From: Bugula neritina
Lineage: Eukaryota > Animalia > Bryozoa
DNA: 64,000 nucleotides
Reading direction: 5' to 3'
Assembly: GCA_964035545.1 (NCBI GenBank)
Contig: CAXIUT010000042.1
Location: forward strand, 2,883-66,882
The notes under the pieces were generated by a model. The model searched no databases. It saw only the letters and a list, made by a program, of their open reading frames with translations, and was not told where the DNA came from. The translations under genes and the position numbers were made by a program. Shown piece after piece: positions 6,822 to 63,794 of the stretch (positions within the stretch are counted from its first letter, which is position 1; each line of letters starts with the position of its first letter).

Positions 6822-7075
6822 TAAATTATAGATTATCATCTAAATATATTTCAGTTAAAGTCAATTTATCTTAAATCATCGATATCAATCAAGTTATCTG
6901 ACTACTCAGACAAGGCCGCAATGTTTGACGTCTATTGACTTTTATAATTAGAAGTAGGAAAAACATTTATTTTAGTGTGAATATTAAAAAGAGTCAATAC
7001 AGATCTTTCAAATAGTTTATTTTACATTCTTAATCAAATCAAGTTGATAAAAATTCATCATTTATAAAATCATCA

Positions 7076-49070: not shown

Positions 49071-52000
49071 TCAAGATGGAACATTTTATCTTTTTTGAAC
49101 GATTTAATTGATTTATCTATATAATTTTAAATAGTTTTTATACTGAAGTGTTTTGCTTAATATCTTATGATTCTAATGACCTTCAGTATCTTATTCATCT
49201 TGGGAATCGCTAACTATTTTCACTAGTTTTTCAATTGTTTGTGGAATATTTTAACTAAATTGATCAGAAATTAAAAAATATAATCTATCATACTCAGTTG
49301 ATAGTTACTATTCTTGACATTTTAGTTTTTATATTTACTTTATTAATAATTTTTTATTATTTTATAATGATTTATATTATTATTGAAGAAGTTGTATTTA
49401 CTTTTAGTTTTATTATTTGATAGAATATAATTATTGAACCATTTTATATTTATTATTTTATAATATTTTAGCTTTTAGAGGTATATTTTTTTATCTTAAT
49501 CTTGATATTTCTTATTTTTTGTAAATTTAGTTTTTTTAATTTAATTTTTATATTTAGCTATTTTTTTAATTTTTAGCTTTTTAGAGAAGATATATTTAAC
49601 TTTTACAAATACTATTATGAAATTTTAATGTTTGATTTTTAAATAATTTATCAAATATTTACTGTTTTACTATTGCGATATGATCTCTAACTATCTGAAT
49701 TGAATTTTTATGATATTATTTACTAGGAATCAAATAGCTAATTATCAAAGATGGTAATTATTTTTGGAGATTAGTTTTATTAAAATTTTATATAATTGAA
49801 ATTTATATATATTTTCTATTTCTTGCTAATTTTAAACCTTGTAATTAAATATTTTTACTTTGAATTAATATAGTTTATTATCCTTAATTTAAACCTATTT
49901 TTTATATCAAATTTTTAGGATCAAATTATTTAGAACATTATATTCTATGAGTTATTTTTCTTTAAATATTTTGAGTAGAACACATATATATACTTTAATG
50001 ACCAATAACGAATTGTGATACTTTATGAGATTTTTTTATTTTTTTATGATTATTAAAAACAACCTCTTGTGATCTACCCATAATCTTTTTATTATCAAGA
50101 TGATAAATAGCTCCAATCTAATATTATTTTATTATTATGTGATCTTTTTAATACCCATCTGATAACTAATCTATCATTTTAAAATAGGAATCAAGTTATT
50201 ATTTTTATTTTTATATTTATTTCTATTTTATTTGGATTTTTATATTGCATTATTTATCACATTGTATTTTTTATTATATTTTTTTTATCAGTTTTTATTA
50301 TTGGAATTTTAATTATTTTATTCTTTATGAATAATATGGAAGTTATATTTTAGATTAATCAACTTAATATATAAAATTCATCTATTATTAACTAAGTTTG
50401 TTATTCTTTATTCTTTATAGTTCGTTTTTAGCTATAGGTATCCATTTTTTTATTAATAATTTTATTTTCTTTTATAAATCTTCAGTTCTATTTTCATTTA
50501 TTTACTATTTCTAGTTTATTTTATGAATATTCGACTATTTTTATGATATTTATTAAGAAACTGTTTTTATTTTATTCGGGAGAGTGATAAGGTAGGGAGT
50601 GAATATTTGAGTAGTCCAAATTCTTGATAAAATTGATATGATTTCTGAAAAAGATTTTTGATTGTTTGATTTTTTCATTATTGGTTTATACTCTTCTTTT
50701 GGGATTTAATTTAAAGGATCTAATAATTTTTCAAGTATAAATTGTCTTTTTTATTAACTTTAATAATCAATATTGATAATTCTCTAACTTTAGCACATTT
50801 CAATTAAACAATTCATTATTTGCATCTTTTTCTAACATTATATTATTGAAAAAACATTGTCTAACTCACCTGATTCCATAGCTTGTTAGAGTTATTTCTT
50901 TATAGTCTAAAATAAAGTTGAAAGACTACTCATTGATAGATCAGAAGAAGATTTTGTTATTATAATATAAAAATGTTGAAAGACGTTGCCTTAAAAATTC
51001 AATAGATTTGGATATAATTTTTACATAGTTTAGAATAGTTCAATTAGACTATTACCTCTGCCATCTGTTATAGTACTCATAGACATAACAAGAACAATTG
51101 CTTTTAATTTATTGATTTATTCTATAGATCTATCCATGCTAAAATTGATACAAAGTTGATAAGTTTATCCTCTAGTATCTTTAAAACCTGGATAATCACA
51201 AAAAACAGTATTTTCGAATGATTTTTTATCAATATCAATAAAATCAAAGTTATTCTATTTTAAAGGATATCCTTTTGCATGTGTAGTTTATGATAGAATG
51301 AAAGAATGACCAATTTTAGCATAATTATTCTAGTTATTGATATTTTATTTATTTTTTACTTTGAAAACAGTTTGATTTAGATCTATTTTTAAGGATTAAA
51401 GTTTAAATCCGATCATATAATTGGTTACTGTACTTTTTCCAGATCCTGTCTAACCATATAAAGCAATACTTTATTTATTATTCATATTTGAAGCATTTAT
51501 TTATGCATTTTTTAATAATTATATCATTTTTAAATGAATAATTTATGATGATTTTACTAGCATGTTAAAATTAGATTTCTTAAGAATTTATTTTAAGATA
51601 AAATTAAATGTAAATTCATTATTACCTATTAAATTATTTAATCTTAGGATAGTATTTATTTATTATCTATATTATAAATGTAGAATATCATTTTATTTAA
51701 AATTTTAATGATGAATAAGTTTTTTCATAAGAAAATCGTAGTGTTTTTATTTTGAAATTTAGTTTATTAAGATATTGGTTTTAGTTTAAATTGTAGTTTT
51801 TATGTTTTTTATATAATTTGTATTATTTTTATCTAACTTCTTCAGATCAATCAACTACTTGACATTAACATTATCAGAATAATTAAATTTTATAGAAGTT
51901 TAGCTTTCTATTAAATAACTATTGATAAAATCTTCATAAAGAATAAAAGTATCTATTTATTTTGATTTATTGAAACATCTGACTTGATGTATTCTTGAAT

Positions 52001-53036
52001 GTTAAGATATTTATATTTATGCAGTGAAAATGTTCTAAGAATTGGAGCATTATTAAAAAATTATAATTAATTTTTAATTTTAGTTATCAATTTATCTTTT
52101 AATATAATATTTTCCTTCAGGAATTATTGCTTTGTTTCGATAATTTATATTTTAAGACAAATATCTTACTATTTTACATTCTTATTCATTATCTACTGAT
52201 TCTTCAAGTTATTTTCTTAACAAATCAACAACTATTTTAGATTTAACTTCGATACTACGAATAAAAGGATACTAATAATATATTGTAATAGTTTTTTATT
52301 ACTAGTTTTCTATAATAGTTAGCTATAAGTGATTTTATTTCTTTTTAGCTATAGTAATATTTCCTTCAATGAATTCTGTTTTTTATTAATTTTTTATTGA
52401 AATTCTATAACCTTATAACTAATGACATATTAACTATTCTTTTATTATTTTTTATACCAAATTTATTTTCTAATTTTACGGTCTAGTGTTGATTACTTTA
52501 GATACTAAGGATGTAAGACTTGATATTCTGATTCCTTGAAATGTTTTCTATCTTATTTGTATTTCTACTTCTTGTTTATTTATTATTTTTCTTGTACATA
52601 GATCTTTAATATATTGTTTAAAGCATTAGAGATTATCTTCTTTCATTTTTTTTATTAATTATTCACTGTTTTGTCTTTAAAGATATTTTATATTGTCATT
52701 TTGTAGTAATAGTTGTGCTGCTTACCAAAATATATTTGTATCTATTTTGATTTTTCCTATTTATTCCTTTATTTTTATTAACATTTTTTATGTGCTAGCA
52801 TTTTTTAAACTGATTAAAAGTTGTTAAATTGTATTGTTAAAATAGATAGGAAAGTTTTTATTGATTTTATACTCTTTATTTTCATTAAGTATCACCAATA
52901 GATATTCTAACAACTATTTTGCGAGATAAGGATTGGGTTCCTCTGTAATAATTTTACAAATTTAACAAACTAGCTGATCACATGTAGGATTATTAGTCGA
53001 CTAGAAGATGAGTTAGTTTCTAATTGAACTATCCAT
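49071..53036 (-). CDS. Giant intronless P-loop GTPase (TRAFAC; AIG1/MMR_HSR1-like domain) with long helical flanks, 1321 aa
   Basis: No in-frame TGA over 3966 nt (checked line by line); G1 GETGSGKST (about 51429-51455), IGHS..SET, G3 DYPGFKDTRG, IVLV, DGRG. Confidence 0.8.
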
Positions 53037-53191
53037 TAATAAATATGTTGATGATACAATAAATAATTAACAAAAATCTATCTTAGAATAAATTAAATCG
53101 AAAAATGTCAATAAGTATCATCTTGATTCAAATATCATTTCTTTTAGTTATCCTATAAGTTTTTACCAATAAATAAAAATATTATTATCAG

Positions 53192-54621: not shown

Positions 54622-57600
54622 ATGACACAAACTGGATAGTCATCACCTAACTTAACTGGAGTTATTGATTCATTAGTCGACAATAGTACTCCTAATAGGC
54701 TATCATTTAAACGTTTTAGTTACTCAAGGCACATAGGAAATCATATAAATAATAATAAACATACTGAATCAACTCCATTTATGGAAATAAGGCCATTTAA
54801 AAATGATAGGTCTGAAGAAAAGAAATTAAAAAATACAAACTTTAAAGAGAAAATATAAAGCTTTAAATATAATTCTAGTGAGGAGAAAATTAAAAAAACT
54901 AATAGAATTAAAGAATTTCGTTCTGCTGTCAATTTAGAACTAGATCCTAAGGATTAAAAAGTATAAATTCCTTTTTAAAGTTTAACATACTCTAGTTTAA
55001 TAAAAAATAACTTTAACTAAAATTGTTTTGAATAATTTTAGAATTAGCTTAGAGATTGGTTAGTTGATGTAATAGAAATAGTAACTTCCATTGGATTCAA
55101 CCATATGAATAAGGGAACTTTAACAGAAAAGCAAACAAAAAGTTTTGTATCAAAAAATATTCTTCATAATATAAAATAAACATTTGAAAAATATAAATAA
55201 ATACCATTAGAAAATCGTTTTAGTTTGATTAAATTTGCAAATAAGTAAATGTATAGCATATTTGAACATGTAGCTATTAAATATCCTCAAACAAGTAGTA
55301 AAGGAGTAAGTAGAAGAATCAAATCAAGAATACCTGTACTTGATAACAGATAAACTGATTAATTTGATTTTCTTTGGAGAAATAATATTCATATCAAATA
55401 TAGAGAAGATGGTGATTATTCAGAAGATATTATGCGAATCATTAACAAACTTGTTAGTTTTTCTAGTGATGTTTTTGATCCCTAAATGGAGTTAGAAGAT
55501 AGCAATTTCTAAGTTTTTTCTGATGTAATGGAGCTAATATTCGATAACGCAAGCAGCCAATCGGCAGATGCTACTGCTAAAGATGTGATTAAGACTCTTT
55601 AAAAGAAAAAAAGGATTTAATAAGAATAAAATTTTTGTTCTAAAGTTAGTTTTAAAGATTTTGATACGCTTTCCATGAACAATAGTAGAAGGTTTATTTC
55701 TGGAAAATAATCTAATAAACAGGTACTTATAGGACAAAAAATACCAGCTTAAGTGCCTACTTTTAGTGAGGAAAATATTCGATCATCTAACTTTAAGACT
55801 TATGGTTCTTCTATTTTAAGGTTGCTTACTAAGTGGGCTTAATAACTCAGATATAAAATAATTAATGCTGAAGAAACTATTCACAGAAGAATATTTAAAT
55901 TCAAAAATAACCGAGGAAGGTTAATAAGTCTTGAACCTACTATGAAGGCCAATCTCTATGAAGCAGCAATGCTGGAGACTTAAAAAATCGAAAGTTATTT
56001 ATAATATTTAAAGGAATAAAATTTTTATTTACAAACTATTTTCTCAGAGTAGGAAAGTCGAGGAAAATACTCAAAAAATGATATGAAAGTTAGTGTTTTT
56101 GCAGCTAAAGTTAATGAAGTTGCAAGTCAGTATATTTTCAAGTCTATTAATCAACTGATACACTCATTGCTTACAATACCGATAGTTGCAGCGTAGAAAG
56201 TTTCAAGTGATTGGTAGAAGGCAGTGATTTCATCTATTGATTTGGTTACTTTCAAGATAGGAGATATGATGAGGTGTAAATGTGCTTGTTCTTAATATGA
56301 GTTCATTAAAATATTTGGTGCACTTGAATCACTTCATACAAACAATCCTGAAATTTTGAAACTTGTTCGTATTAAAAATAGATTATAAACTTTGAATAAT
56401 GATATTTTAATTAATCTATTTTTTGGAAGTAAAGTTGAATGCTAGTTACAACTATCTGTTATGAGTGCAGACAAAAAAGATGAAAAAAATAGTAGTAAAT
56501 TTAGTCATCTTATTTATGAAATTGTAAGGGCATAGCTAGGACCTATATCAGAAATGGCTACAATAATGGTACAATATGATCCACTTGCTTATCACTATTC
56601 GAAAAAATAAGATTATGGACCTGACTTGCTGTAAATCAAATAAAATAAAATATAATAAAGGAAAGAGAATCATCCTAATCCTTGTGAAAGATAGTCTTTT
56701 AGGAAAAAGATGAAACTTGGAAACAATATTGAGTTACCTTTTGTATGTTGTGGTTGTCAAAAATTATCAATAGTTAAGAATCCTTTTTATTATTAAAATA
56801 AAAACAAAAGATATTGTCATAATTGTACTATGAAAACTAATAAAGATGAAGATTGGCAGATAGTTCGAAAGAATGTTGGAAATTATAACTTCAAAGATTA
56901 AAAGGATAGACAATTTTATCATAATCATATATTTTCATGGGATAAATAAAAGTTTATTAATGAAATAAAAATGAAAATAAAGATTCTGTGACTACTATGT
57001 GGTTTCCTTCAAAGGTTATATATTTAAACATCATCAAAAATATCCTAAATTATAACTCTTTTCAAGTTATTTTCAACCTACTTTCTCCTACTAAATATTC
57101 ATTCACGTTAATTAAAATAATTAAGAAAAACTATTGCTTTCAATTAAAGTACATTAAGAAAAACAAAAAAAATTGATAAGTATAAGTAAATAACTGAAAG
57201 ATCTAACTCTGATTTAATTTAAAAATGCTTTATAAATATAATAAAATGGTAAAAAATATTTTATTTGTACCAAACATAATTGTTGTGGAATAAAGTTTTA
57301 CCCAGGAAAACTTATGAACAAAGCATAACTACAGCGACTATCAAGTGATAAAATAATAGAGACCATAATTGGATCCCAAAGAACTCTTTTATATCTAAAC
57401 TATATGTAAAAAAGTTTTGACCATCTTAAAAAATACATGAGTTCAATAAAATAAAAGAGTAAAATAACAAAAATAAGAACAACTGTTCAGGCAATTGAAG
57501 CATTTTAATGTCAATTAACAAACATTCATATTGTTGAGATGTTTACTAAAATATCTGACTTGAACATAGGACAGAATCCTGGTATAAAGTCTCTTAAAGG

Positions 57601-58209
57601 GATATAGAACTGTTTGCAGCTGAAATATTTGAACTGTAATCATTGTGATTTAGAATGTGTAAAAGAATTAAAAGCATTGAAAAAACTATAAACAATAAAT
57701 TTAAGTCATAATAAAAAATTAAATTCAATTGAAAGCCTATCTGATCATACTTAAATACTAGATTTATTTATGAGTAATATTTTTAATTAATATAGAAAAG
57801 ACTTCTATTTCTAGTTTGGCTCCTTTGTCTAAATGTGTTAAGTTATAATCATTGGATATCTAAGGCTGTATCAATATTGAATCAATAGCTGAAGTCAAAT
57901 CTTTAAAACTTTCATATCTGAACATAAGTATTTGTTTTTTAAATAGTTAACTGCAATAAAATAGATTCTTTTGATTTGCCAAGATCTTCATTTTTATCTT
58001 TAAGGACAATCTAAGTGATCAATAAAGAGGAAAGCAAAAGTGAAGAAAATAATTTATTTATGAACTTATTATCAAATTTTGCTCTCAATCTTCCTTCATC
58101 TTCATAAAAAAATCAATAAAAAGAGGAAATAGTAAATTGTTAAACTGTTTAAAAGATAAATAGAATTCTTTTAATGAAAAAAAGTTCAACTAATCCACAA
58201 ATCGTTTGA
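54622..58209 (+). CDS. RelA/SpoT-like nucleotidyltransferase domain + Cys cluster + C-terminal LRRs
   Basis: IGDMMRC, LVRIKNRL, NDILINL, CELQL, SHLIYEIVR; LRR part joined across a frame break at about 56952-56991; two further tiny introns. Confidence 0.7.
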
Positions 58210-58257: not shown

Positions 58258-59114
58258 TCACTTTTATACTTTACTTGATCTGATATTTAATCTTGGAGAG
58301 TTGTCTTTATGAGAAAGTTCTTATTATCTGATATATTCTATTTCTTTATTTTATTATTATTTCAAAATTAACTGTTCTGTTAAATTTCTACTGCTACTTT
58401 ATTCTGAAGATTATGACGATTATTCTTTTTGATTCATTAATACTGATTTCATCCGAATTCTTTCATTTTCTGTCATTTTAGATGTCTTCATTTTGTTATT
58501 AAGTCTCTTTGTTTTACAAACAAGGACAGTAATAACAACAATAAAAATTATATAGATAGTAACTGTGATAAAAATAAGTCGAGTTCCTAAGTATTAAATA
58601 ATATACCTAAAATTTGATAACTTGAACTGACTTAGATATCCACATTTATACCCACGTCAACGTTAATAGGCGAGTAACCATATGATCCAGAAGGATAAGG
58701 GAATAGGGTGTTATCAACTATAAAGGAAAAAGCAAAGTTACTTATTTCTTGTATTGATTGATTTATAGTTTGTCTTTATAGAGAATTGATTCTTAGTTGA
58801 GTATTTCTATTCGTCAAAAAAGGACAAGGATATAGATAGCTTTGACTATTTACAGATTTAGTATAGCAGTTAATGTCTTATTCAGTTATGCAATAGAAAT
58901 AGTCAAAATAGCGATTAAAAGATTGAATTGTATTAGATACAGTTGTTTATAAAGATATGTTAATTGGTATTAATTCTGCATTTTAGCGGTTGATGTCTAC
59001 TCGGCAATTATATTGTGAGTCACTAGGGATAAGTATATTTTTTTTGCTTAAAATGAAGTTAATGCTTTGAACTAGAAAAGGAAATAAGGCCAAAAGTACG
59101 AAGAGAATTTTCAT
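58258..59114 (-). CDS. Type I membrane protein
   Basis: Signal peptide MKILFVLLALFPFLVQS, Cys-containing ectodomain, single TM, basic stop-transfer; one 20-nt intron. Confidence 0.65.
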
Positions 59115-59245
59115 TATTATTGATATTATAAATAATAATTTTGAAATTTCAAAGTAATTTTTATTTGAAAAGCAAAATCAACAAACATATAACTAAGTAA
59201 TTTAAATAGTATTTTGAATAAATAAATATTATTTATTATTATCGA

Positions 59246-60265
59246 TCAAATTTTATTGACGTCAAAAGTTATATTTAATAGCTTTTACGAAAGATTCCAA
59301 AGACGGTTACAATTTTAATTAGTGACGAATGGATTAATCCAATCTTTCTTGCACTATGCGTAATATTCTCCGTTTTAAACTGAAGGATCTAAAAGAGCAA
59401 ACATTGTTGTTTGATTTCCTTCTTAGATATTTTTGGTAAAATAAGCATAAATAGGATATACTAGCCAAGAAAGGGCTAATAAAATAGGTCCTATTATTCT
59501 AGAGGAATATATTTAGCTGATAATTTTAGTCCTTACAATACCTGGATGGACACTTACAACTTTTCCTTTAGAATCTTTACTCATTTTATTTCTAAATTAT
59601 TTAGTTGCCATCACTATACATAGCTTAGATCTTGCATATGCTTCATTTGAATTATAGTTTTTTGTTATATTGATGTCTTCAAAATCGATAATTGGCTGTC
59701 CCCACATTGTAAGATTCATTTTTTTATGAGTTATTGAGGCTAGATTTATTACTCTGAACTTCTATGACTTGTTAAGAATCGGCCATAAAAGATAAGTTAG
59801 ATAGAAGTGACCAAGATAGTTTACTCCAAAATCCATCTCGAATCCCTAAGATGTTTTTTTTGCTTCATTGATATTATAAACTCCTGCATTATTTACCAAA
59901 AACTAAAGAGAAGATATTTTGATATTTGAAACAAAGTTTTCTATTGATTTTTTACTTGAAAGATCTAATTAATAAAACTCAATATCTGATAGATGGTAAT
60001 TTTTTCTAACTTTTTTCATAAGTTCTTAAGCTGCAAGGCGATTTCTATCAGCTATGATTACTGAACAGTTTAATTTAGCTAGTTATATTACAGTTTGAGA
60101 TCCTAATCCTGAAGCTCCTCCAGTTACAAGAGCATATTTACCTTTTAAATCAATTTTAGGAATTTTATAGGAAGTTCCTCTCAAGTACTTATAGAAGCAG
60201 TAGAGAAAAGTGAGGATGATGACTATGATAGTTAATTCTAGAGGGTACGAAAGTAAGTTTTACAT
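59246..60265 (-). CDS. Short-chain dehydrogenase/reductase (retinol dehydrogenase/WWOX-like)
   Basis: VTGGASGLG, LVNNAG, FGVNYLGHF, YARSK, VHPGIV, LWNLSE. Confidence 0.92.
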
Positions 60266-60705
60266 TAATTTTAAAAATATATTTAAATTAAAAGGAATAT
60301 ATTATTTTTAATAAAAACAGCTTTAAAATGATTTTTTAAATCATAAAAGAAGTAAAATTTATTCTTCTATATTCTTTTCATTAAATGATAAAGATATTAT
60401 TATGACCTTTTTGACTTATTTATTAGATTTTATGAATTTATTTTTCCACTTAGTATTTTTTTGAATGATTTTGAAAATACATATTTGATTTATTATCTAT
60501 CTTTTACTTCATTTTAAAATAATAGATAATCTTGAGAACTAACCAAAAAATATTTCACTTTAACTTTTAATTAAAATTTAATATTTCAAGAACATTTTTT
60601 CACTTATATCTCGTATATTTAATAAATCTTTAAAAAAAATATTTGAATAAATTAAGATAATTGGATATAGAAAATAATTAATTAAGATAATGGAACTTTA
60701 TAATC

Positions 60706-62445
60706 ATGGAATCATTAAGTAGAAAAGAACTTTCTAATATTCTTCCCTCTCTCTCAAAGGAGGATATTCCTTAAAGTACGAATAATCTACCCTCTTCTTC
60801 CCTTCCCTTAGAAGCTAATACTACATTTTATTCCAATTCTGCCTTTTAGAAGCCATCTAAAATACCTAGACTTCACTCTAAACTAGATAAAAAATCTGAA
60901 AATAAAAATAACAGTAAATCCAACATACTTTTGCCACTTAAAAAGTAAAATAATAATGATGAGTTCAGAGTTAGACCTGTAAAAAATAGTACTGATAGAT
61001 AGTTTGATCTGAATTCAACATCTTTTTCCAAAAAGAATATGGGAAAGTTATTGTTGATAAAGTAGGTTAGCTAAACACCAAAAAATAATATATCTTCTTA
61101 AGTAGTATTGAAGAACACAAATATATTAAAGCTGAAAACATCTAATACAAATCAATATATTCAAAATGACATGAATTCTCTATATAGTTCAAAACCAAAT
61201 CTTCTATAACAATCTAACAACTCATTGAAAACACCATTTGAAATTAAGAAAGGATAATCTTTTCAACAAGTATCCCTTCAAATATCATCACCTCATATTA
61301 ATCTTCTAAATAATAAAAATAAAAATACAGAAAACAATAGTAAAGCTGAATAAGCTAATATTAAAAAAGATGATTCTTTAAAATAGAATAATTTATCTGG
61401 AGATCAGAAATTTTTATGTATTTTTATGTTTAATTTAGAAACTCATTCAATTTTTAAAGAACAGAAAAATAAGTTTTGGAATAAGTCAATTTAAAATAAA
61501 AAATATAAATATAAATATTCTCCTCAAGAAACAGCTTATGATAGTTCTTAAGAATAATAATAATATGAAGTATAAGCTACTCCAGGACCTGGATCTTATA
61601 ATTTATAATCCAATAAGAAGTGTTAGTTTAGATCTAAAAAAGAAGAAATTCAAAAAATATTTTATAGTAATATGAATAGATTCTAATAATCTACAAAATA
61701 AAACTATGATTCATCTTACCTCAAAGAATAGCCTTCTCTCAATTCTTTTATTACACAACAAAAAAATAGTAGTTTCCTTTCGAAATCGCCTAAATTCTAA
61801 AAATGTATCGTTGAAAATACTCCCCCTCCAGGATACTACAATACTCGTCAAACCCTTTAGCATCAACTTGTGAGAAATATTTTAAAGAGTTCTAATTCTC
61901 CTTCTTTTATCAATAGTATGAGTCGTAATCAAGCCAAATGTGAAGTTGAGACTAAGCCAGGTCCAGGTACTTATCAACTTGATTCAATAGTTGATAAAAT
62001 TTTATAATAAAAAGATAAAAATACCTATTGTTTTAAGTCATCTGCTGTTAGAGATAATCAATACTATTCTTAAAATAATTAAATATCGAAAAGTATGTCG
62101 AAATTTCCTTTATACATTGCTAAGTAATATCCAAGTTAAATTATCCATACAAAAGAAGACTCGATAGTTGAATATGACTCTTTACTGGTAAATCCTCCTT
62201 TTCTCAGTAGTTCAAATAGATTTCCTCGTTAAAAACTTGAATTAAAATAAAAGAAGAAACCATAGCCAATTTTTCAAGCTCCTATACAATACTTTAAACC
62301 TGTTTAACCTTTGCCTACTCCTTTCAATTCAACTTCAAAGAGATAAATGATGATCTAGGGAGGTAATGGAGTTGGAGTAGGTCTTTATAATTTATCTAAA
62401 AATGATAATTGGGATAAAAAATCTTTTAATGTGATCTTTAATTGA
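60706..62445 (+). CDS. Sperm-tail PG-rich (SHIPPO/STPG) repeat ciliary protein
   Basis: TPGPGSYN, TPPPGYYN, KPGPGTYQ, GVGVGLYN, C-terminal WDKKSFNV. Confidence 0.75.
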
Positions 62446-63723: not shown

Positions 63724-63794
63724 TACATCAGCCGGGAATCGAACCCGGGTCGACAGCTTGGAAGGCTATAATTTTACCTCTAAACTACTGATGT
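63724..63794 (-). tRNA. tRNA-Gly(TCC)
   Basis: ACATCAG/CTGATGT acceptor stem, ATAGC-CTTCCAA-GCTGT anticodon arm, GGTTCGATTCC T arm. Confidence 0.93.

Follow-up and report, generated by a model that had tools for sequence, protein, structure and literature searches.

A candidate RelA/SpoT-like domain joined to a zinc ribbon and leucine-rich repeats in a conserved gene read with the peritrich nuclear code

Does a protein that combines a divergent alarmone-synthetase-like domain with a cysteine cluster and leucine-rich repeats (LRRs) belong, in a ciliate, to the RelA/SpoT homolog (RSH) enzymes, and if so, what would it do? The question is raised by a locus at 54622–58209 of a 64,000-nt stretch of DNA (contig C51, positions 2883–66882; hereafter the window) from an AT-rich assembly of 216 Mb in 321 contigs that is filed under Bugula neritina. 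Known roles of RelA/SpoT-type synthetases are those of alarmone enzymes in bacteria and plastids, of bacterial toxins and anti-phage effectors, and of effector domains in fungal NOD-like receptors (NLRs). A first-pass annotation, made from the letters alone, had proposed that the locus encodes such a synthetase in a code in which UAA and UAG (UAR) specify Glu. The reading that we consider fairly probable is that of a conserved gene of a UAR = Glu ciliate combining an RSH-like domain, a zinc ribbon and LRRs, in which the domain would be an RSH-derived, Mg-dependent transferase under the control of a sensor. The gene and the parts of it that bear on its identity are the following.

54622–58209, + strand: whole gene, from ATG 54622 to the stop TGA 58207–58209, with many in-frame UAA/UAG read as Glu
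56119–56607, + strand: divergent RelA/SpoT-like domain, consisting of a helix with an invariant N..LIH, a beta-alpha-beta-beta-beta core and a helix with H..YE..R..GP
56263–56265, + strand: invariant Asp of FKIGD, candidate equivalent of the RSH catalytic Asp (RelSeq D264)
56443–56451, + strand: TAG-TTA-CAA, read as Glu-Leu-Gln on the ExQ strand, candidate equivalent of the RSH EhQ (RelSeq E323, Q325)

For assignment of the genetic code, the window protein was aligned with its relatives with X at each UAR codon. In the alignment with the closest own-genome paralog (contig C231), the residues facing UAR codons were E in 17 cases, D in 7 and Q in 2, in a comparison in which standard-coded Glu made up only ~4% of residues; against five metagenomic relatives, they stood opposite E 92 times and Q 11 times. 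Both sets of counts bear out the proposed UAR = Glu assignment. Under the peritrich nuclear code (NCBI table 30), UAR specifies Glu and TGA is the stop codon, and the locus displays both marks, with its in-frame UAA/UAG codons opposite Glu in homologs and a TGA at its end; judged from these alignments, the host of the gene is a UAR = Glu (peritrich-code) ciliate. The Glu of the ExQ motif is itself a TAG (56443–56445), as had been stated. The same Glu is encoded by GAR in L017, L019, L021, L015, L055 and L056, and is spelled UAG or UAA in seven copies (window 56443, L007 6407, L009 1627, L013 1174, and the C86 and C66 paralogs) that come from AT-rich and GC-rich genomes alike. The UAR spelling at this near-invariant Glu of C-E-x-Q is probably due to chance, and any standard-code gene caller would cut the domain exactly there. 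As a practical warning, the domain is missed by standard-code annotation, by Gln-code annotation and by Pfam.

The gene limits proposed earlier were recovered, and the model ends at TGA 58207–58209. Once two introns are removed and two 1-nt gaps are allowed for, the gene comprises ~1180 codons, its sole TGA is the terminal one with none internal, and its product aligns with those of L017 and L019 over residues 91–1051 at 52–54% identity. As assembled, frame 1 (positions = 1 mod 3) from ATG 54622 contains 43 in-frame TAA/TAG before its first TGA at 56989, and the strings on which the synthetase proposal was based (IGDMMRCKC, LVRIKNRL, NNDILINLFF, VEC-TAG-LQLSV and SHLIYEIVR) were all found in this frame. 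A 1497-nt contig from a related strain, with the same species label (record 13 of run X2; hereafter the X2 contig) is collinear with 56552–58046 at ~97% identity. Of 40 listed substitutions between this contig and the window, the third positions of frame-1 codons took 29, the first positions 9 and the second positions 2, so that the strain differences carry the signature of a constrained coding sequence. Given this third-position bias, the five other own-genome matches and the more than 100 relatives in metagenomes, the locus is, on sequence grounds, one real gene under selective constraint and more than a chance open frame.

The relatives were reached from a 40-residue window piece, which led to metagenomic fragments and from these to contigs whose homologous loci contain fewer UAR codons. 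With a profile built from staggered pieces, 118 fragments were collected, with identity down to 36%. A metagenome DNA-pattern scan with a 30-residue piece returned 344 pattern matches, none of which was confirmed. Run against the genome of the window itself, the same profile found six loci, namely the window and these five profile matches:

C231:8028–8582: family match
C86:20746–21267, − strand: family match
C63:63149–63601: family match
C66:60245–60664: first family match on this contig
C66:76956–77306: second family match on this contig

Domain, zinc finger and LRRs were present together in the window, C231, C86 and the first C66 locus, and LRRs were not found in the frames read at C63 and the second C66 locus. 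Counting own-genome paralogs and metagenomic relatives, the fused architecture was seen down to 38% identity in the domain. Canonical LxxLxLxxN repeats number more than 15 in the C86 array. In the C63 copy the ExQ strand seems to be disrupted, and the second C66 copy is the most divergent of the own-genome copies.

Domain database, fold and family searches used as queries either stop-free window pieces or the stop-free ortholog piece L019:3789–4277, which is 163 residues long and covers the whole domain; the identity of L019 to the window protein is 54% overall and 80–90% over the aligned domain pieces. An AlphaFold2 model of the L019 piece made with a deep alignment had a predicted local distance difference test score (pLDDT) of 77.9, with 84–96 over residues 11–120, and the topology helix, helix, strand, helix, strand, strand, strand, long helix; an earlier run with a shallow alignment (pLDDT 54) was set aside. 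When this model was compared with the PDB using Foldseek, a check that the first-pass annotation had proposed, small alarmone synthetases (SAS) were the top matches and occupied all of ranks 1–11 (6fgk, 8vx3, 6ex0 and 5ded among them; E 2e-3 to 2e-2, probability 0.84–0.99). About 30 of the top 50 were RSH enzymes, including Rel and SpoT, and nucleotidyltransferase folds were further represented by poly(A) polymerase, NF90 and Utp22. In VIA comparisons, model residues 45–117 matched SAS2 with Z 6.5 (2.3 Å over 66 residues), CapRel with Z 6.4 (2.2 Å over 67 residues), SpoT with Z 6.3, B. subtilis Rel with Z 6.1 (chain residues 259–334) and M. tuberculosis Rel with Z 6.1; for RelSeq, Z was 6.0 (2.2 Å over 63 residues, 18% identity, model residues 47–117 against chain residues 262–333), and the root-mean-square deviation (rmsd) for RSH enzymes ranged from 2.2 to 2.5 Å. 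The named matches in BFVD were a phage RelA/SpoT protein (probability 0.99, 2.2 Å over 68 residues) and Tas1. The ESM Atlas searched by shape gave three rows of RelA/SpoT clusters (TM 0.41–0.44), and searched by learned features gave the RelA_SpoT set as 66 of 100 named matches, with scores of 0.92–0.93 and 183–188 of 256 features shared, values that in the Atlas calibration are typical of true family members.

Foldseek against the PDB and BFVD, Atlas shape and features, and VIA, with the invariant Asp and Glu-x-Gln in register, favor a RelA/SpoT-type fold as the best match of the predicted structure, and the domain is likely to be homologous to RSH synthetases. Both by features (0.95) and by shape, the closest cluster in the Atlas consists of 173-residue hypothetical proteins labeled mostly Nucleocytoviricota, and BFVD also lists uncharacterized Mimivirus, Orpheovirus and Klosneuvirus proteins; these neighbors may be mislabeled ciliate fragments or true giant-virus look-alikes.

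Residues of the domain were numbered on the L019 piece and counted over the family sequences. The Asp of FKIGD (D49) was D in 76 of 76 sequences, and on the ExQ strand E109 was kept in 47 of 48 and Q111 in 52 of 52. Equally constrained were R52 (80/80), K86 of R-I-K-N-R-L (70/70), N99 of N-D-I-L-I-N (61/61), H130 and Y133 (each 49/49), E134 (47/48), R137 (48/48) and G141 (47/47). In RSH synthetases, Mg2+ is held by two residues, an Asp from the loop that precedes a core strand and a Glu from a rigid strand (RelSeq D264/E323, RelP D107/E174; PMC7983052). The aligned ranges put D49 at or next to RelSeq D264 and E109 no more than 2 residues from E323, so that on these ranges the two would correspond to the catalytic Asp of the Syn2 motif and the Glu of E-x-Q in Syn4. 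Asp and Glu are 60 residues apart here, against 59 in RelSeq; in RelP the distance is 67 (PMC7983052).

Whether the domain and the LRRs belong to one protein depends on the region in which the assembled frame breaks and on the introns beyond it:

56966–57011, + strand: two 1-nt gaps in A-runs, after 56966 (frame 1 to 3) and after 57010 (frame 3 to 2); TGA 56989–56991 lands in frame 1
57509–58020, + strand: leucine-rich repeats, ~8 repeats of 22–24 residues, interrupted by two introns
57774–57795, + strand: intron 1, 22 nt, GTAA...TAG; leads from frame 2 to 3 and keeps LRR continuity
57928–57946, + strand: intron 2, 19 nt, GTAT...TAG; its removal opens the frame to TGA 58207

A single frame break had been described here; a break is present, but it consists of two 1-nt gaps, after 56966 and after 57010. 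The X2 contig has one inserted A behind each of these positions, both in A-runs, and once the two A are added, frame 1 gives way to frame 3 for 44 nt and then to frame 2, so that TGA 56989 is no longer in frame. Homologous segments follow one another in the same order in the window, ..HIFSWDKEKFINEI in frame 1, KNENKDSVTTMWFPSK in frame 3 and GYIFKHHQKYPKLELF in frame 2, and L019 reads ..HLSHWDSEEFIQ-LQRETEESVSAKWFPTKGFMIRLNQKKPKLEIF in a single frame; the segments shared with L019 and L017 over the three frames are ..WD.E.FI.., ..WFP.K and G..I...QK.PKLE.F. The N-terminal region through the LRRs forms one TGA-free frame in L013, L017, L019 and L056 and in the own-genome C86 paralog, as does the domain through the LRRs in a C66 paralog. 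Because the relatives have these single open frames, the LRR fusion is a conserved feature of the family, and the fusion that had been proposed across the break is seen intact in four metagenomic relatives and the C86 paralog. The same frames rule out a separate LRR gene starting from ATG 56997, just past TGA 56989. A 27-nt GT..AG intron spanning the TGA was likewise rejected, since it would keep frame 1 and not the homologous frame.

The two short introns appear to be shared with L013, which at the place of intron 1 has an extra in-frame stretch and at the place of intron 2 has a frame that ends just past the same LSYLN motif; we read these as the same two introns. In L007, which corresponds to the C231 paralog, the frame changes between zinc finger and linker (6838–6874), and the homologous frame would be regained by removal of a 37-nt segment, GTATC...ATTAG; this segment exceeds the ~20-nt introns typical here, and the change may instead reflect another 1-nt gap.

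Several observations weigh against an RSH-derived enzyme. The first-pass annotation had proposed a search with PF04607, and there the profile methods (HMMER and hhalign) saw no RelA_SpoT, so that the RelA/SpoT-type assignment stands at the level of fold and not at that of sequence profiles. A six-frame PF04607 scan of the genome with stops read through matched only the bacterial-type contig C311; hmmscan of the intact L019 domain and of all 102 family members returned no RelA_SpoT even at E 1–10, the profile cut-off for PF04607 was not reached, Pfam gave no match for the stop-free window pieces, and a profile hmmsearch against PDB sequences found nothing (a Mengo virus VP4 match in the first such search was due to chance, and the repeat gave nothing). 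When hhalign was run with 33 RSH sequences, the alignment was confined to the ExQ strand, in the expected register (N..F....CElQLsv with H.t.F....EvQiRT) and with a score, 20.6, that was not significant and hardly exceeded the maximum of 19.2 in 30 column shuffles; against a single bacterial RelA_SpoT protein, again only the ExQ strand was aligned, not significantly. The hhalign negative is weak, since the RSH alignment was narrow (one bacterial phylum). The domain keeps the Asp and ExQ, and two of the five classical synthetase motifs are missing from it. Syn1, R-x-K-x3-S-x3-K, which contacts the ATP phosphate, was not found upstream of the Asp, where the preceding helix has only the invariant N..LIH and variable K/R; a conserved basic RRIFKFKNNRGR lies ~115 residues upstream of the domain Asp. 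Syn3, G-[YF]-x-S-x-H, is absent, and the family has in its place [TN]-N-D-I-L-I-N (D in 52 of 61, N in 61 of 61), with no aromatic residue. Every Foldseek E was above 1e-3, TM-scores were ~0.3–0.44, all VIA Z were below the caution line of 8 for that tool, and the residue equivalences come from aligned ranges and not from a residue-by-residue superposition. The reference copy is frameshifted as assembled, and the locus appears in no run on record as RNA (X1 gave 22–33-nt scraps only, X3 and X4 no contigs).

These points can be explained in other ways. The domain might be a generic beta-alpha-beta-beta-beta module, VOC/glyoxalase-like or lineage-specific, unrelated to RSH enzymes and binding a metal, a ligand or a protein. 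No sequence-profile link to PF04607 was found, and VOC modules share the core connectivity (3l20, 2p25) and reach VIA Z of 5.2–7.1, tied with the RSH values of ~6 and in 3l20 (7.1), 5kef (7.0) and 2p25 (6.2) equal to or above them. Foldseek, however, puts SAS enzymes first in the PDB and RelA/SpoT and Tas1 in BFVD, Atlas features favor RelA_SpoT and not VOC, and the RSH alignments are longer than the VOC ones and of lower rmsd. The invariant D and E-x-Q, moreover, stand at the place of the RSH catalytic pair with the same spacing, whereas VOC proteins pair two modules around a metal held by His/Glu, ligands without a counterpart in the single module found here, which has flanking helices and the Asp/Glu-x-Gln typical of RSH. 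We regard a generic module as unlikely. Loss of the canonical Syn1 and G-Y-x-S-x-H motifs would also fit an RSH-derived but catalytically dead domain, acting as a pseudoenzyme scaffold or nucleotide sensor within an LRR protein; a dozen polar residues, two carboxylates among them, are (near-)invariant down to 36% identity, which would be unusual for a dead enzyme and makes this explanation improbable. An alpha-kinase-like domain was considered because of weak Pfam Alpha_kinase matches in 3 of 102 family members (best E 0.009). The F-S-H-x-x-Y-E, a D-P ~20 residues later and the following zinc site are features that we take to recall alpha-kinases. The matches were below threshold, and none was found among 10 longer members scanned singly; no fold search returned an alpha-kinase, the catalytic D-x-Q is not conserved and the predicted topology differs, so that this identity is effectively refuted.

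A further explanation concerns the sequenced strain and does not contradict the family-level reading: its gene may truly be broken by two frameshifts, as a pseudogene or with an LRR-less product ending at TGA 56989. Compared with the X2 contig and with the frame shared by all relatives, the reference is one A short at each of the two sites, and none of the runs on record as RNA supplies evidence for the locus. Set against this, both gaps are in homopolymer runs, the usual place of assembly errors, the LRR frame beyond them has no TGA and keeps 52–54% identity to relatives, with both introns intact, and the X2 contig, under the same species label, is intact; a broken gene is therefore rather unlikely. 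If the two gaps are assembly errors, other frame breaks, in-frame TGAs and frameshifts in this genome may also be 1-nt homopolymer gaps.

Under the reading of an RSH-derived transferase controlled by a sensor, the product would be a cytosolic protein of ~1180 residues (no signal peptide was seen by eye in the window protein) composed of an N-terminal region, an RSH-type nucleotidyltransferase domain, a C4 zinc ribbon, a Cys linker and a C-terminal LRR array. The domain would descend from the RSH synthetase fold and could act as a Mg-dependent transferase through its invariant Asp and Glu, in the manner of RelSeq D264/E323; the chances that it is catalytically active appear evenly balanced. In RelSeq, Y308 stacks on the acceptor guanine and the ATP contacts lie largely on the preceding helix (PMC7983052). 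Since neither the Tyr motif for guanine stacking nor the Syn1 motif of the helix is present, the enzyme probably does not act on GDP/GTP in the classical way. Its donor and acceptor contacts would have been rebuilt, with another nucleotide, an RNA end or a protein as candidate acceptors. By analogy, the product need not be (p)ppGpp, and synthesis of a classical alarmone is quite unlikely. The LRR/zinc-finger part may bind a ligand or partner that controls the enzyme, as do the C-terminal sensor of CapRel and, presumably, the repeats of fungal RelA_SpoT NLRs; the labels 'alarmone synthase', 'toxin' and 'defence' are inferences. As a speculative extension, which we rate as doubtful, such proteins could be ciliate-specific innate sensor-effectors lacking a NOD module, in which a ligand of the LRR/zinc-finger part switches on a re-tooled RSH enzyme that makes an unconventional nucleotide messenger or pyrophosphorylates RNA or protein, arresting the cell or signaling infection. 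They would then be a eukaryotic counterpart to immunity of the CapRel type, possibly with giant-virus look-alikes.

The remaining parts of the protein were delimited by conservation among the relatives.

54892–56118, + strand: N-terminal region, residues ~91–499 (~400 residues), conserved in L007, L009, L017, L019 and L056
55885–55920, + strand: basic motif RRIFKFKNNRGR, within the conserved N-terminal region
56746–56826, + strand: zinc ribbon C-x2-C ... C-x2-C, with CCGC from 56746 and CHNC ending at 56826
57245–57325, + strand: linker Cys motif C-x5-CC, ahead of the LRRs, conserved in L007, L013, L017, L019 and L021

No convincing family was found for the N-terminal region in Pfam or the ESM Atlas, and the CobT/VWA-like leads from Atlas features were weak and of low recognition. 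The Cys cluster reported earlier (CCGC...CHNC) is present, and its four Cys are kept in L007, L017, L019, L056 and the own-genome paralogs; they are also kept in L055, which, like some paralogs, has extra Cys. The LRRs were likewise upheld, by orthologous pieces that pass the Pfam cut-off for LRR_4 (L019 1.2e-10, L017 3.3e-10, L056 6.7e-11; L056 also LRR_8, 1.1e-8), and a 27-residue LRR piece of the window itself gave a weak LRR_4 match (E 0.03). Between the domain and the LRRs, Pfam showed no NACHT/NB-ARC P-loop NTPase in the window or its relatives, and only the zinc ribbon and the Cys-containing linker are found there.

Other genes in the window were as follows.

49071–53117, − strand: large frame, ~1350 codons TGA-free, in a 20%-GC stretch with 151 in-frame UAR
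58488–59177, − strand: small hydrophobic protein
59246–60340, − strand: short-chain dehydrogenase/reductase (TGGASGLG), read with UAR = Glu
60475–62445, + strand: protein with repeated PGPGxY motifs, sperm-tail PG-rich-repeat-like, read with UAR = Glu
63724–63794, − strand: tRNA-Gly (anticodon TCC); no other tRNA was found in the window

The frame at 49071–53117 contains a GETGSGKST P-loop (GxxGxGKS), a DxPG motif and long Glu/Lys-rich, coiled-coil-like parts, and may be a large GTPase gene located directly upstream on the opposite strand. The neighbors do not suggest an operon-like link to the gene. Elsewhere in the assembly, the sole canonical RelA_SpoT match is a 327-residue protein on contig C311 (PF04607, 48 bits) that adjoins an NA37 nucleoid-associated protein (L003 1048–3170; L008). 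C311 is 27 kb long, has 36–48% GC and stop-free bacterial-style open reading frames, and its nearest relative (36% identity) is in a Sulfurovum metagenome-assembled genome; these features mark it as bacterial, probably a contaminant or symbiont contig in a ciliate assembly.

If the fold assignment is true, it would extend the RSH fold to a free-living, non-photosynthetic protist and add the new domain combination of RSH-like domain, zinc ribbon and LRR; retention of the metal-binding pair with replacement of the donor and acceptor motifs would point to new chemistry. A literature search found no description of RSH-like proteins in ciliates. Among known enzymes, RelQ/SAS1 and RelP/SAS2 (5ded, 6fgk, 6ex0) are the best Foldseek matches; like the domain, they have the beta-alpha-beta-beta-beta core with a helix on either side, an Asp ahead of the first core strand and an E-x-Q in the last. 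Where SAS have K-D-Y-I and G-Y-R-S-x-H, the window domain has the strands R-I-K-N-R-L and N-D-I-L-I-N, and its last motif is H-x-x-Y-E instead of H-x-x-Y-K. Unlike SAS, the window domain has no Pfam match and no R-x-K-x3-S-x3-K helix, and N-D...N replaces the guanine-stacking Tyr and the His; SAS are single-domain enzymes, whereas the window domain lies within a eukaryotic protein that carries a zinc ribbon and LRRs. The Tas1 (p)ppApp synthetase toxin and phage RelA/SpoT proteins, its BFVD neighbors (probability 0.97–0.99, 2.2–3.6 Å over 68–72 residues), illustrate acceptor switching within the fold, but they are bacterial or phage single-domain effectors with no detectable sequence similarity to the window domain.

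CapRel (7ztb; PMC9712102) resembles the window protein in having an RSH-fold enzyme and a C-terminal sensor or regulatory part in one chain. Its C-terminal zinc-finger-like domain senses a phage capsid protein (PMC9712102), and RSH enzymes include (p)ppApp synthetases and tRNA 3′-pyrophosphokinases, so that RSH folds can act on tRNA ends instead of making ppGpp (PMC11559606, PMC9712102). CapRel and FaRel2 (PMC11559606) differ in being bacterial or phage-borne, ~350 residues long and equipped with a pseudo-zinc-finger sensor, whereas the window protein has LRRs. Fungal NLRs whose N-terminal effector domain is a RelA_SpoT domain (Dyrka et al. 2014, PMC4986451) are similar in that a eukaryotic RelA/SpoT-type domain is coupled to a repeat array, read as effector and sensor. 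Theirs match PF04607, are N-terminal to a NACHT/NB-ARC NTPase and are followed by WD40, TPR or ANK repeats; the window protein, in contrast, has no NOD module, its repeats are LRRs and its domain is invisible to Pfam. The layout of the window protein suggests a sensor coupled to a nucleotide-transferring enzyme.

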